A stretch of DNA of 64,000 nt from Octopus sinensis (GCF_006345805.1 NC_042999.1:157108001-157172000); one strand, 5' to 3'; positions 11,721 to 63,238 are shown, numbered from the stretch's first letter. Numbers and translations are program-made. Notes: generated from the sequence alone by a model not told the origin.

Positions 11721-11993
11721 ACATTTGTACATAAAAAAATAAGAAAGAATACTTTTGCATTATTCCATTGGCCCCTTATTTTTGTTTAAAACAAGAAATC
11801 ATGCCAAAAGTATACATGAATGTTAATAACAAGTCATGATAATGAGTAGCTAATACTTGAAATAAATAATTTGACAATTTCTATAAATTTTTTTCTAACT
11901 CCTATTTCAGGTGTATGAACCTCATCTTGAAAACCATTACAAGAAACTTCACTGATAGATTTCATCAGCACGTTACAAAACACAGTCTACAAT

Positions 11994-12157
11994 ATGTCTG
12001 GTAGAGAGCTTGAATTATCACAAAGTGAATATTCAGAATTAATGCCATATCAAAAATATTTTTCAAATCTTCCTTCTACAGTGGCACCATTTTATAATAT
12101 GGCATATGATGAACAAACGAATGTACCAGATTTTCGACATCAAGAAAGTAGTGTACA
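11994..12157 (+). CDS. First coding exon of Smad MH2-only (Expansion/Rebuf-like) gene; exon starts at 11911 with 5' UTR
   Basis: Strong acceptor (ttttttctaactcctatttcag|, branch-like CTAAC) at 11910. ATG at 11994 has A at -3 and upstream in-frame TGA stops. Open frame MSGRELELSQSEY...HQESSV; donor |gtaagt at 12158; ends in phase 2. Confidence 0.7.
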
Positions 12158-12344
12158 GTAAGTATGAAAATTTGTATAACCCACTTTAAAGATATCAATG
12201 CAATTTCAATAACTTATAAATGAGAAAATTATGAACATGAGACTCTATAATTGTTAAATCTTTCCTTCGCAACAGAATGAGAGCTAACCACTAATAAGGG
12301 TTTCAAATTTAGGCACAAGGCCAACGGTTTCAGGGCAGGGGTAA

Positions 12345-12492
12345 GTTAGTTACATCAACCCCAGTGCTTCACTAGCACTTATTTTATCAACCATGAAAGG
12401 AAGAAAGGCAAAATTGGCCACGACGGAATTTGAACTCAGAACACCTCTAAACATTTTGCCTGGCATGCTAACAATTCTGCCAGCTTACCACC
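12345..12492 (-). mobile_element. SINE family A (diverged)
   Basis: Homology to 821-1051. Confidence 0.65.
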
Positions 12493-12564
12493 TTAGCCAA
12501 TCACTAATAATGAGACAAGTTTCTCATACTTGAGTTACTTGCATTTATGCAATGTATCAACATA

Positions 12565-12969
12565 TACTCTTTTACTTGTTTCAGTCATTTGACTGCGGCT
12601 GTGCTGGAGCACCGCCTTTAATCGAGCAACTCGACCCCGGGACTTATTCTTTGTAAGCCCAGTACTTATTCTATCGGTCTCATTTTGCCGAACCGCTAAG
12701 TGACAGGGACATAAACACACCAGCATCGGTTGTCAAGCAATGCTAGGGGGACAAACACAGACACACATACATACACACACACACACATATATATATATAT
12801 ATACATATATACGACGGGCTTCTTTCAGTTTCCGTCTACCAAATCCATTCACAAGGCTTTGGTCGGCCTGAGGCTATAGTAGAAGACACTTACCCAAGGT
12901 GCCACGCAGTGGTACTGAACCCGGAACCATGTGGTTGGTAAGCAAGGTACTTACCACACAGCCACTCCT
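12565..12969 (-). mobile_element. SINE family B
   Basis: Full-length homology. Confidence 0.85.
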
Positions 12970-13350
12970 GTTGCATGTTTACATGCAACACATATATGAC
13001 AATTAAAATTAATATGGAGATTAGTACATCGGCAAATTTTTATTTCTTCAGTAAATTATACAGCATATTTGATTTAAATTTGTCCAGTGCACATTTCGGC
13101 TGCATCGAAAGCTATTTTTGACTGGTTAGCAGTCTCTGCAACTTTATTCAAGGTTTATCCACAGATGTGATCTGAAGCAAACTGAGTGTATCTATACTTG
13201 ACTATTGCTATTTTGCTAGGTTACAGTAGTTTTCAAGAGAAGCTTAGCAAAATAATGTCAGCCAAGCATGTATATAGATATAATCAGTTCACTTTGGACC
13301 ATATCTGCAGACAGACTCTGAAGGAAATAAAAAATATACAGAGGTACTAA

Positions 13351-13754
13351 TACTCTCTTTACTCTTTTTCTCTTTTACTTGTTTCAGTCATTTGACTGCA
13401 GCCATGCTGGAGCACCGCCTTTAATCGAGCAACTCGACCCCGGGACTTATTCTTTGTAAGCCCAGTACTTATTCTATCGGTCTCTTTTGCTGAACCGCTA
13501 AGTAACGGGGACATAAACACACCAGCATCGGTTGTCAAGCAATGCTAGGGGGACAAACACACACATGCATATATTTATATACATATATACGACGGGCTTC
13601 TTTTTAGTTTCCGTCAACCAAATCCACTCACAAGGCTTTGGTTGGCCCGAGGCTATAGTAGAAGAAACTTGCCCAAGGTGCCACGCAGTGGGACTGAACC
13701 TGAACCATGTGGTTGATAAACAAGCTACTTACCACACAGCCACTCCTGCGCCTA
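13351..13754 (-). mobile_element. SINE family B
   Basis: Full-length homology. Confidence 0.85.
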
Positions 13755-14024
13755 TCTTCATATTTATTGTAATTGTCTTAGATATAGATTCAATAAAATG
13801 TTCACAACCCAGTGAAGTGAACCTAGGCTTTACCCTTAGCAAAATTACAATTGGATTGCTCACCCTAAGTAATCCTAAGTACTCTTTTCAACTCAATGTG
13901 GTTAGCTTGAAATCTGATTATAACTGATTGCTCTTAAAGGTACCTACTTGGATAATTTATCCCTATCTACTCACCAATATATATATATATATAAATTTTC
14001 ACTAATGTAGCTAGAAGCTTCCTG

Positions 14025-60640: not shown

Positions 60641-60771
60641 TTGCTATCTGAACTGAACTTAAGGCATTGTTCAAAGATGTGGGGGTGAATTCCAGCATGC
60701 AGACACAGTCAGAACACCTGCTGTGCCCTTTCCAAGACTTCATAGTCCCCATGGATTGAAAAGTGATGAAC

Positions 60772-61176
60772 AGGCGTAGGAGTGGCTGTGTGGTAAGTAG
60801 CTTGTTTACCAACAACATGATTCTGGGTTCAGTCCCACTGCATGCCACTCTGGGCAAGTGTCTTCTGTTATAGCCTCAGGTCGACCAAAGCCTTGTGAGT
60901 GGATTTGGTAGATGGAAACTGAAAGCCTGACGTATATAAGTATATATATATATGTGTGTGTATATGTTTGTGTGTCTGTGTTTGTCCTCCCAACATCGCT
61001 TGACAACCTATGTTGGTGTATTTACGTCACCGTAATCTAGCAGTTTGGCAAAAGAGACTGATAGAAAAAATACTGAGCTTGCAAAGAATAAGTCCTGGAG
61101 TCAATTTGCTCGACTAAAGACGATGCTCCAGCATGGCCGCAGTCAAGTGACTAAAACAAGTAAAAGAGTAAAAGAG
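60772..61176 (+). mobile_element. SINE family B
   Basis: Full-length homology. Confidence 0.85.
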
Positions 61177-61646
61177 ACTTAAATGATTTTCAACCTTTAT
61201 TGGGGCCATCAGAGATGTCTATATTACTTGACTAATTCCAGAAAAACAAATAGCCAATCCATTTATATATTCCATGTAATGATGTGGAACATTGTATTCT
61301 GTATCATTTGTAGAATGATTATTTGTTCCATGAAGTAACTAAATATTGTTCAAAAATTTTGACATGGTTCATGTGATTACATTTTGAATTCTGAAATTCA
61401 AAGTCAAATATGAGTTCTAGTATGTTTTTGTGTATATGTTTAAAATAACTTTTTTGTTAATGTAAATTATAAATTCAGTCTTCTGTAGGATCTGGAATGA
61501 AAATTTAAATGTTGTTTTCTCTATAAATGGCGGTGCCCCAGCATGGCCACAGCTTGTGAGCTGAAACTAAAATAAAATAAAAAAATAAAAAATAAAAATA
61601 TACTAGGCTTTAAGTTACTTTTTGTGTACTAATTCTGACTTGTAGA

Positions 61647-62061
61647 TACTCTTTACCCTTTTACTCTTTTACTTGTTTCAGTCATTTGACTGTGGCCGTG
61701 CTGGAGCACCACCTTTAGTCAAGCAAATCGACCCCAGGTCTTATTCTTTGTAAGCCCAGTACTTATTCTATCGGTCTCTCTTGCCAAACCGCTAAGTTAC
61801 GGGGACGTAAACACACCAGCACTGGTTGTCAAGCGATGCTGGGGGGACAAGCACAGACACACAAACACACACACACACACACATATACATATATACGACG
61901 GGCTTCTTTCAGTTTCCATCTACCAAATCCACTCACAAGGCTTTGGTCATTGCAAAGCTATAGTAGAAGACACTTGCCCAAGGTGCCACACAGTGGGACT
62001 GAACCCAGAACTATGTGGTTGGTAAGCAAGCTACTTACCACACAGCCACTCCTGCGCCTAT
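61647..62061 (-). mobile_element. SINE family B
   Basis: Full-length homology. Confidence 0.85.
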
Positions 62062-62327
62062 ATATAGAACTTTCTTCTGATATATGAATATGATAAGCAT
62101 ATTGTAATGTTTTTCTATTACACTCTTTTTTTTATTCTGCAAATATCTAGGGGTCATCATTGTTGTTATTGTAGACAACATCATTACCTTCAGTTTTATT
62201 ATCAGTTACTAATTCCCTGATTGAATTTTAATACTCTTTACTTCTTTTATAATTACAATTTCTTCAAACGGTTTCCTTAGATGAAAAGGAAGTAGTATAT
62301 TCTAAAGAGCTCATCCATTCTAACCTA

Positions 62328-62717
62328 TACTTTTACTCTTTTCGTTGTTTCAGTCATTTGACTGTGGCCATGCTGGAGCACCGCCTTTAGTCGAGCAAAT
62401 CGACCCCGGGACTTATTCTTTGTAAGCCCAGTACTTATTCTATCGGTCTCTTTTGCTGAACCGCTAAGTGACGGGGACGTAAACACACCAGCATCAGTTG
62501 TCAAGCAATGCTAGAGGGACAAACACAGACACACAAACATATACATATATACATATATACAACAGGCTTCTTTCAGTTTCCGTCTAACAAATCCACTCAC
62601 AAGGCTTTGGTCGGCCCGAGGCTATAGCAGAAGACATTTGCCCAAGATGCCACGCAGTGGGACTGAACCCAGAACCATGTGGCTGGTTAGCAAGCTACTT
62701 ACCACACAGCCACTCCT
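62328..62717 (-). mobile_element. SINE family B (head continues at 62985-62992 after insertion)
   Basis: Full-length homology. Confidence 0.85.
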
Positions 62718-62978
62718 GGGGTAGAAAGAGCTCCTTAGCCGTAGTGAAGGCAATCTATCTAGGGAGATAACCTTACAATAAATCACTCGGTCCGTAGCTT
62801 AGAAATACTGGGTTGACGTCCAACGGGAACAGCTTTGTTTCATGGAGGAGGAAAGATCTTCTTTAGTACTTGGTTGTACAATGCTTTCCAATGTGTGTAG
62901 TAGTGGCGCACACACACATTATTAGCCATTTGAAAAGACTATGAAAGTTTCGACCACGGTCGAACAATGATGATGATG
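62718..62978 (+). mobile_element. Short RTE-tailed non-autonomous element with ACTCCT target-site duplication
   Basis: Same tail (cgaccacggtcgaacaatgatgatg) as LINE at 22671; ACTCCT at 62712-62717 and 62979-62984; splits a SINE head. Confidence 0.75.
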
Positions 62979-63076
62979 ACTCCTGCGCCTATATGAAATA
63001 AAAATTTAGAAATAAAAATTTAATACAATTACAGAAGCAGTATTTTCTTATATTTATCTGGAATTTTGTTTTTCAG

Positions 63077-63238
63077 CAAGTTATTCTGACTCAAGATGAA
63101 AAGGGCAGCATTTATTTGATCAACAACAGCAATTTCTCTGTATTTATTAAAGATTATTTGGACATGAAACAGCCATACTTCTCGCAAGAAGTTATTGAAC
63201 AGCGAGGAGTTATTTTCGGCCAAGGAAAACCAATTAAA
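63077..63238 (+). CDS. Coding exon 5 (162 nt) of MH2-only gene; gene continues beyond window
   Basis: attttgtttttcag| ... |gtaaga. 54 open codons QVILTQDEKGSIYLINNSNFSVFIKDYLDMKQPYFSQEVIEQRGVIFGQGKPIK, aligning by eye to MH2 strands (Smad4 [25 protein letters not shown]...IKVF). Confidence 0.8.

Follow-up and report, generated by a model that had tools for sequence, protein, structure and literature searches.

What kind of protein is encoded by LOC115209391, a gene of Octopus sinensis whose product carries an MH2 domain as its only recognised module, and from which branch of the MH2 superfamily does it come? The question was approached from a stretch of 64,000 nucleotides (GCF_006345805.1, NC_042999.1:157108001-157172000), here called the window, in which a preliminary description based on the sequence alone had pointed out a spliced MH2 gene resembling Drosophila Expansion and Rebuf (Exp/Reb). 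The analysis places the protein among MH2-only proteins of the Expansion type, neither a canonical Smad nor an IRF, and relates its entire tail to that of myosins ending in an MH2 domain. Its identity and homology are hardly in doubt, and the reading favoured here, with moderate confidence, is that the product is homologous to the MH2-myosin tail, lacks the motor and serves as an adaptor in the cytoplasm.

Five GT-AG exons rebuilt from the window on the + strand are joined in phases 2, 0, 2, 0 and 0 into 198 stop-free codons; counted from the ATG at 11994, the coding pieces measure 164, 49, 161, 58 and 162 nt (594 nt in total). The spliced peptide is identical at 198 of 198 positions to residues 1-198 of XP_036357426.1 (P0002), the 389-residue "uncharacterized protein LOC115209391 isoform X2" of O. 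sinensis at NCBI. The O. vulgaris orthologue, from a very close species, is 95% identical and differs within these first 198 residues, so that the window belongs to O. sinensis or to something that cannot be told apart from it; the cephalopod origin suspected beforehand is thus borne out. The observation of five spliced exons is confirmed, far beyond chance: exons, phases and open codons were all reproduced from the sequence, and the four single-exon peptide fragments quoted in the preliminary description lie on the + strand where it had placed them, while its fragment KIGLRSI crosses the exon 3/4 junction. Two of its epithets have to be dropped. The gene is not hidden, since NCBI already annotates three isoforms, and it does not consist of five exons: the orthologue of Argonauta hians, whose spliced coding sequence was reconstructed from its locus, has 10 coding exons, and residues 199-389 of the O. 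sinensis protein find no match in the window, which ends in the intron after exon 5. The window is the 5' half of LOC115209391, containing coding exons 1-5 of about 10.

Several details of the exon structure deserve mention. Position 11911 is the splice acceptor of a partly untranslated exon and not the start of a reading frame; the translation of this first exon is identical to residues 1-54 of P0002 and constitutes a disordered N-terminal region. For the very short exon 2, which the preliminary description had not specified, 41 segments of 49 nt were mechanically possible, and a pyrimidine tract together with a gtaagt donor occurs in this one alone; it matches P0002, and the proteins of O. 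bimaculoides and Argonauta have an aligned counterpart. Exon 3 completes the N-alpha helix and contributes the first MH2 strands with tryptophan W90, which is invariant in the family; exon 5 supplies the central MH2 strands. An alternative first coding exon, read as ATGCTGTGGAGACTTATGAAATGCTTCAG/gt within intron 1, matches the N-terminus of isoform X3 (XP_036357427.1, P0136).

The complete protein of 389-390 residues is composed of a disordered N-terminus (about 1-58), an N-alpha-MH2 region (about 63-258), a long basic helix (260-312) and a C-terminal part with a 'KRKTRMSL...FMKYSW' motif followed by a 'KMWA[KR]V' helix. Since the window contains no more than model positions 2-104 of 174, about 60% of the domain, its peptide narrowly misses the 25-bit cut-off of the Pfam MH2 family (PF03166) with 24.3 bits; the full O. 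bimaculoides orthologue covers model positions 2-173 and reaches 42.5 bits (E 1e-10). Together with a Foldseek probability of 1.00 to MH2 structures, this bears out a domain that had been called by eye. An AlphaFold2 model built from a 33-sequence alignment (the three octopod sequences alone gave a mean pLDDT, the predicted local distance difference test, of 31) exceeds pLDDT 90 at about residues 65-275 and predicts a beta-sandwich behind a helix at 63-83. This N-alpha helix has a block pLDDT of 87-96, and the region aligns with Expansion 'LYKEHIQEVLDKW'. The L3 loop is short, 'ADAQRCMESPSW' in the octopus and 'KSEGDLLDCPIW' in Expansion, the octopus loop being one residue shorter; Smads need a 6-residue insertion here, in line with the 11 residues reported for Expansion and 17 for Smads (PMC4388265). 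The Pfam scan detected neither MH1 nor an IRF domain on the octopus protein, the isoforms of 345-421 residues showing MH2 alone, so the earlier statement that MH1 is missing stands; there is also no SSXS tail, as the C-terminus reads ...ENMSNENM.

These features bear directly on the possibility of a Smad or an IRF. That the gene is a fragment of a canonical Smad or IRF-like gene is conceivable insofar as the IRF association domain has the fold of MH2 and weak IRF matches do appear in Foldseek. Yet none of 120 scanned relatives carries an MH1 domain, the IRF matches fall short of Expansion by about nine orders of magnitude (about 1e-6 against 1e-15), and the annotated protein begins in the window behind an in-frame stop, leaving this explanation with practically no probability. 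The canonical Smad or IRF reading is refuted by the tests named for it beforehand. A second proposal, already raised in the preliminary description, is that the protein modulates TGF-beta/BMP signalling as an MH1-less decoy whose MH2 domain engages receptors, R-Smads or Smad4; it draws on the fold and on the fact that Smad-like regulators lacking MH1 can be imagined. Smad MH2 domains (R-, Co- and I-Smads) do belong to the same superfamily and have the same fold, but L3, through which Smads bind phosphoserine and receptors, has the short form seen in Expansion, the SSXS tail is lacking, and an extra helix lies over the trimer interface. In Expansion this helix sits on the Smad trimerisation surface, with which it clashes, and Exp/Reb transduce no TGF-beta signal (PMC4388265). 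Moreover, a profile of the octopod proteins reaches none of the dozens of Smad chains in the PDB at E<=10. A role as TGF-beta modulator is accordingly rated very unlikely.

Among solved structures, Drosophila Expansion (4R9P) is the nearest, both by sequence and by fold. Chain A of 4R9P is the only PDB sequence matched at E<=10 by the O. bimaculoides protein (E 2e-8), and the octopod-only profile likewise has it as sole match (E 2e-12). With a broader family profile the order is 4R9P (E 3e-87), Smads (about 2e-20) and IRF4, which is only marginal. In Foldseek searches of the PDB, 4R9P came top with E 1.2e-15, a target TM of 0.80 and a root-mean-square deviation of 2.9 Å over 209 columns of the 210-residue chain, compared with about 1e-11 for Smad2, Smad3 and Smad4. 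The claim that the protein is nearer to Expansion than to Smads or IRFs is upheld by these values, and the three spacing motifs that had been cited in its favour are found without insertions or deletions in the 4R9P sequence as well as in the octopus protein.

Such resemblance, to which the extra helix preceding the MH2 fold, the short L3 and the absence of MH1 and SSXS contribute, is what speaks for a true orthologue of Expansion (CG13188) or Rebuf (CG13183) acting in the same way, in chitin translocation in beak, radula and sucker epithelia, as the preliminary description preferred. The listing of the family in Mollusca adds to it: Beich-Frandsen et al. (2015) described Exp/Reb as restricted to protostomes and named Mollusca, Annelida and Arthropoda (PMC4388265). 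By the same listing a mollusc member, here the octopus protein, is not new at family level. The orthologue reading is nevertheless contradicted by the CM2 motif, by the tree and by the extent of homology. CM2 (DDPYYCGL + RARVPNFVK, read from the deletion primers of PMC9894549 and located in P0071 and P0036) is represented by the pattern P[YF]Y[CS]G[LIV] in at least 15 ecdysozoan relatives, whereas no octopod, P0004 or myosin-tail protein contains it. A neighbour-joining tree of 88 domains (192 columns, rooted on Smad1 and Mad, 200 bootstraps), which is distance-based and has a long octopod branch, groups 4R9P with arthropods and nematodes in 85.5% of replicates, and this clade excludes the cephalopods in 197 of 200 (98.5%). 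The myosin tails of cnidarians, echinoderms and molluscs branch below it together with the cephalopods; in the same tree the ecdysozoan Exp/Reb clade was seen nested among MH2-tailed myosins. Finally, homology to Expansion ends with MH2. The regions that follow are unrelated, the octopus having its YSW and WAK motifs there, while homology to myosin tails continues to the C-terminus. Because CM2 is absent and the protein falls outside the Exp clade, it is not a strict Exp/Reb member; of the label "Expansion/Rebuf-like", the Expansion-type MH2-only architecture with its N-alpha helix and short L3 is retained, and membership of the ecdysozoan clade is not. Strict orthologues with a shared function are considered unlikely, and the chitin role itself has been demonstrated in insects only.

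The closest affinity over the full tail is to myosins. A profile of three octopod proteins, run against 1.84 billion representative proteins, recovered 118 relatives at E<=1e-3. Among the 115 first scanned with Pfam, 113 match MH2 and eight carry an N-terminal myosin motor; five further relatives, four of them search matches and one a cluster member of a match, are all motor-bearing, which brings the motor-bearing profile matches to 12 of 118. A homologue search started from a 19-sequence alignment returned five proteins only and added nothing. The best match after the octopods is P0004, which has no motor; this distant motor-less relative (P0004/P0121) is known from Logan read assemblies, in contigs of about 1.6-1.8 kb that each contain a complete open reading frame (ORF). 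The top non-cephalopod matches are not Exp-like but proteins with a myosin head and a C-terminal MH2, from Sinanodonta woodiana, Patella vulgata ('unconventional myosin-IXAa', XP_050406757.2), Littorina saxatilis ('myosin-Id-like'), Batillaria, Aplysia californica ('myosin-IIIb', XP_005106930.2), Acanthaster planci ('myosin-IIIb-like', XP_022083353.1) and, lower in rank, a jellyfish. The entries P0005, P0010, P0025, P0044, P0094 and P0125, from bivalves, gastropods, a starfish and a jellyfish, were noted as myosins with an Expansion-type N-alpha-MH2 tail.

The extent of these matches is informative. Myosin tails align up to query positions 306-348, whereas Exp-type matches from arthropods and nematodes cover only 62-234, and profile-profile comparison with hhalign gives 323 columns (E 4e-33) with the myosin tails against 173 columns (E 1e-17) with the CM2-bearing Exp proteins. 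Octopods and myosin tails have in common the motif 'RKTR..L...G....M.YSW' and a C-terminal 'WAK[LIV]' helix, and homology extends along the full tail for about 323 columns: N-alpha helix, MH2, helical basic linker, YSW motif and WAK helix. Myosins of this kind have been described before. C-terminal-MH2 myosins occur in a choanoflagellate and a sponge, and MH2 has been proposed to originate on myosins (Sebe-Pedros et al. 2014). Class-80 myosins of Ambulacraria have an MH2 tail, and lophotrochozoan orphans of the same architecture have motors that group with, or are sister to, class-36 (Kollmar & Muhlhausen 2017, PMC5583752), the class of molluscan, annelid and rotifer myosins that bear a chitin synthase (PMC5583752). 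In the Exp/Reb and MH2-myosin literatures, as far as they were searched, no paper joins the two, and the Exp/Reb papers do not mention myosin.

Where the octopus gene differs from these myosins is in the absence of the motor and the IQ region, in place of which it has about 55 unrelated disordered residues and its own start codon. Searches with tblastn using seven motor-bearing relatives found no myosin motor exon in the window, including the 11.9 kb upstream of exon 1; the in-frame TGA closes the frame upstream of the ATG; and across four octopod species the annotated isoforms measure 331-421 residues. Taken together, the missing myosin-head match, the upstream stop and the short isoforms indicate that there is no motor in the octopus gene. 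Notably, the O. vulgaris orthologue bears the annotation 'myosin-IIIa-like', in keeping with the myosin affinity of the tail.

A gene which has lost its motor may be maintained, or it may be a decaying remnant of an MH2-myosin gene, transcribed and with no maintained function. The comparison of orthologues favours maintenance. In Argonauta, whose protein has about 48% identity, exons 3-5 measure 161, 58 and 162 nt, with the same lengths and positions as in the window. Over these exons the ratio of nonsynonymous to synonymous divergence (dN/dS) is 0.31, with dS near saturation, and 71 changes fall at third codon positions against 47 and 36 at the other two. No reading frame is interrupted in O. 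sinensis, O. vulgaris, O. bimaculoides or Argonauta, conservation is strongest in the MH2 core and the two tail motifs, and the motor-less P0004/P0121 preserve complete ORFs. The third-position excess, the dN/dS value, the conserved exons and the identity to the RefSeq protein indicate that the gene is real and, judged by sequence comparison, under purifying selection.

A number of observations weigh against the reading as a maintained adaptor of myosin-tail descent, and those that concern rate of change and sequence loss, together with the loss of the motor, are also what a remnant would lead one to expect. The O. bimaculoides orthologue (LOC106870245) has only 72-74% identity, a sign of fast evolution between close species. 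The O. vulgaris entry CAI9720400.1 (P0134) has a glycine at W90 (window 42090-42092), a tryptophan found at this place in every other sequence of the MH2 superfamily alignment; either an error of sequencing or a relaxed constraint could lie behind the change. Five residues, 'xIGKG', that are kept in Smads, Expansion and the myosin tails, and also in the motor-less P0004, are missing from the proteins of octopus and Argonauta. The gap coincides exactly with the exon 4/5 junction (window 56297 and 63077, residues 144/145), and alternative acceptors or donors there do not restore the residues, as neither read-through frame encodes them. Fast evolution, W90G and the loss of 'xIGKG' could mean relaxed constraint on the protein. 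In the tree, octopods are sister to the mollusc myosin tails alone in just 17.5% of replicates, and a 192-column neighbour-joining tree with a long octopod branch does not fix their exact place among the non-Exp lineages. A literature search on the locus and its accession numbers also found no paper naming LOC115209391. Set against the intact frames, identical exon lengths and localised conservation, a mere remnant is nonetheless judged quite unlikely.

For the favoured reading, a motor-less homologue of the MH2-myosin tail, the following mechanism can be proposed. The octopus protein would reproduce, without a motor, the tail by which MH2-tailed myosins (class 80 and the lophotrochozoan orphans) bind their cargo, and the ecdysozoan Expansion and Rebuf seem to have arisen from this branch of the MH2 superfamily as well. 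It would act as a cytoplasmic, non-DNA-binding adaptor whose N-alpha-MH2 region binds partner proteins, the N-alpha helix presumably blocking Smad-type trimerisation, and its basic, YSW and WAK tail elements could position it at the cortex or membrane, the site where the ancestral myosin would have delivered its cargo. In this way the ancestral partner-binding surface may be kept in a protein that no longer moves on actin, and which might stand in for, or compete against, the transport of the same partners to the cell cortex by a motor. Most plausibly it would regulate secretory machinery on the apical side of the cell, chitin synthase being the first candidate.

The link to chitin synthase is put forward tentatively, as a possibility with less than even chances. 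It is drawn from two independent but indirect lines, namely the homology to Exp/Reb and the reported kinship of the lophotrochozoan MH2-myosin motors with the chitin-synthase myosins. In Drosophila, chitin translocation depends on Exp/Reb as well as on the chitin synthase Kkv (PMC4305360, PMC9894549); the N-alpha-MH2 of Exp/Reb is needed for this activity, and a separate motif gives apical-membrane placement (PMC9894549). How chitin synthase switches from polymerising to exporting is an open question, and Exp/Reb are its only known extrinsic activators. The nearest relatives of Exp/Reb outside Ecdysozoa are myosin tails, and the corresponding motors are reported to group with mollusc chitin-synthase myosins, which suggests that the N-alpha-MH2 module may tie chitin synthase to cortical actin. 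A wider version of the idea, that the Exp/Reb-type N-alpha-MH2 is not an ecdysozoan invention but the detached tail of an ancient MH2-tailed myosin, and that the octopus protein belongs to a bilaterian-wide chitin synthase-actin module, is likewise given less than even chances. If it were true, the lophotrochozoan tail would ride on, or in octopods be freed from, a motor sister to the class-36 chitin-synthase motor, and there would be a lead to the partner 'Factor X' by which Exp/Reb turn on chitin translocation. In the octopus itself, the gene is a candidate regulator of chitinous structures such as the beak, the radula and the sucker lining. As a gene, its novelty is modest, for it is already annotated, fast-evolving and uncharacterised, and its family has been known in molluscs since 2015; the possible descent of the Exp/Reb type from myosin tails, with its tie to chitin-synthase myosins, is the more interesting by-product.

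Table 1. Exons of LOC115209391 and other features of the window, in window coordinates (a slash within sequence marks an exon boundary)
Feature	Position	Strand	Description
Exon 1	11911-12157	+	acceptor ...tatttcag/GTG, donor ACA/gtaagt; residues 1-54 plus 2 nt
Exon 1, untranslated part	11911-11993	+	5' untranslated region with in-frame TGA at 11916-11918; coding sequence from ATG 11994
Alternative first coding exon, isoform X3	22303-22331	+	MLWRLMKCF, S completed by exon 2; gt donor at 22332
Exon 2	26901-26949	+	49 nt; ...ctcacag/TTA, AAT/gtaagt; residues 55-71, start of N-alpha helix
Exon 3	42036-42196	+	161 nt; ttcag/ACT, CAA/gtaagt; residues 72-124 plus 2 nt
Exon 4	56240-56297	+	58 nt; aacag/AAT, TTA/gtaagt; residues 125-144, KIGLRSIPQCQAEILFNQNL
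Exon 5	63077-63238	+	162 nt; ttcag/CAA, donor AAA/gtaaga to exon 6 outside the window; residues 145-198
ORF upstream of exon 1	5761-6285	+	no Pfam match, no reverse-transcriptase motif seen
ORF upstream of exon 1	8934-9506	+	reverse-transcriptase-like 'SGVPQG...YADD', no Pfam match at 1e-3
Two long ORFs	31241-33211	+	second (32276-33211) with weak GIY-YIG match, E 8e-4; first without Pfam match
Non-LTR (long terminal repeat) retrotransposon, apparently intact	33904-36839	+	inside intron 2, same strand as the gene
Retrotransposon endonuclease ORF	33904-34581	+	Exo_endo_phos_2, E 2e-6
Retrotransposon reverse-transcriptase ORF	34866-36839	+	657 aa; RVT_1, E 1e-32; weak PHD-like match

No other cellular genes were seen in the window, and its remaining features are those of mobile and repetitive DNA (Table 1). 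The rise in G+C to 0.42-0.47 at 32-40 kb is due to the region of the non-LTR retrotransposon. The second of the two long ORFs in front of this element may be the remnant of a Penelope-like element, and the ORF with the 'SGVPQG...YADD' signature is probably an old retroelement remnant. Within the introns, a repeat unit 'TGGCTGTGTGGTAAGTAGCTTGCT..ACCACATGGTTC.GGGTTCAGTCCCACT', with 'ACGGAAACTGAAAGAAGCCTGT' nearby, was observed at about 23422-23478 and 39379-39435 and also at 15806, 23551 and 39521; it looks like a family of short interspersed nuclear elements. TA and CA microsatellites are abundant in the window, for example at 1762-2215.

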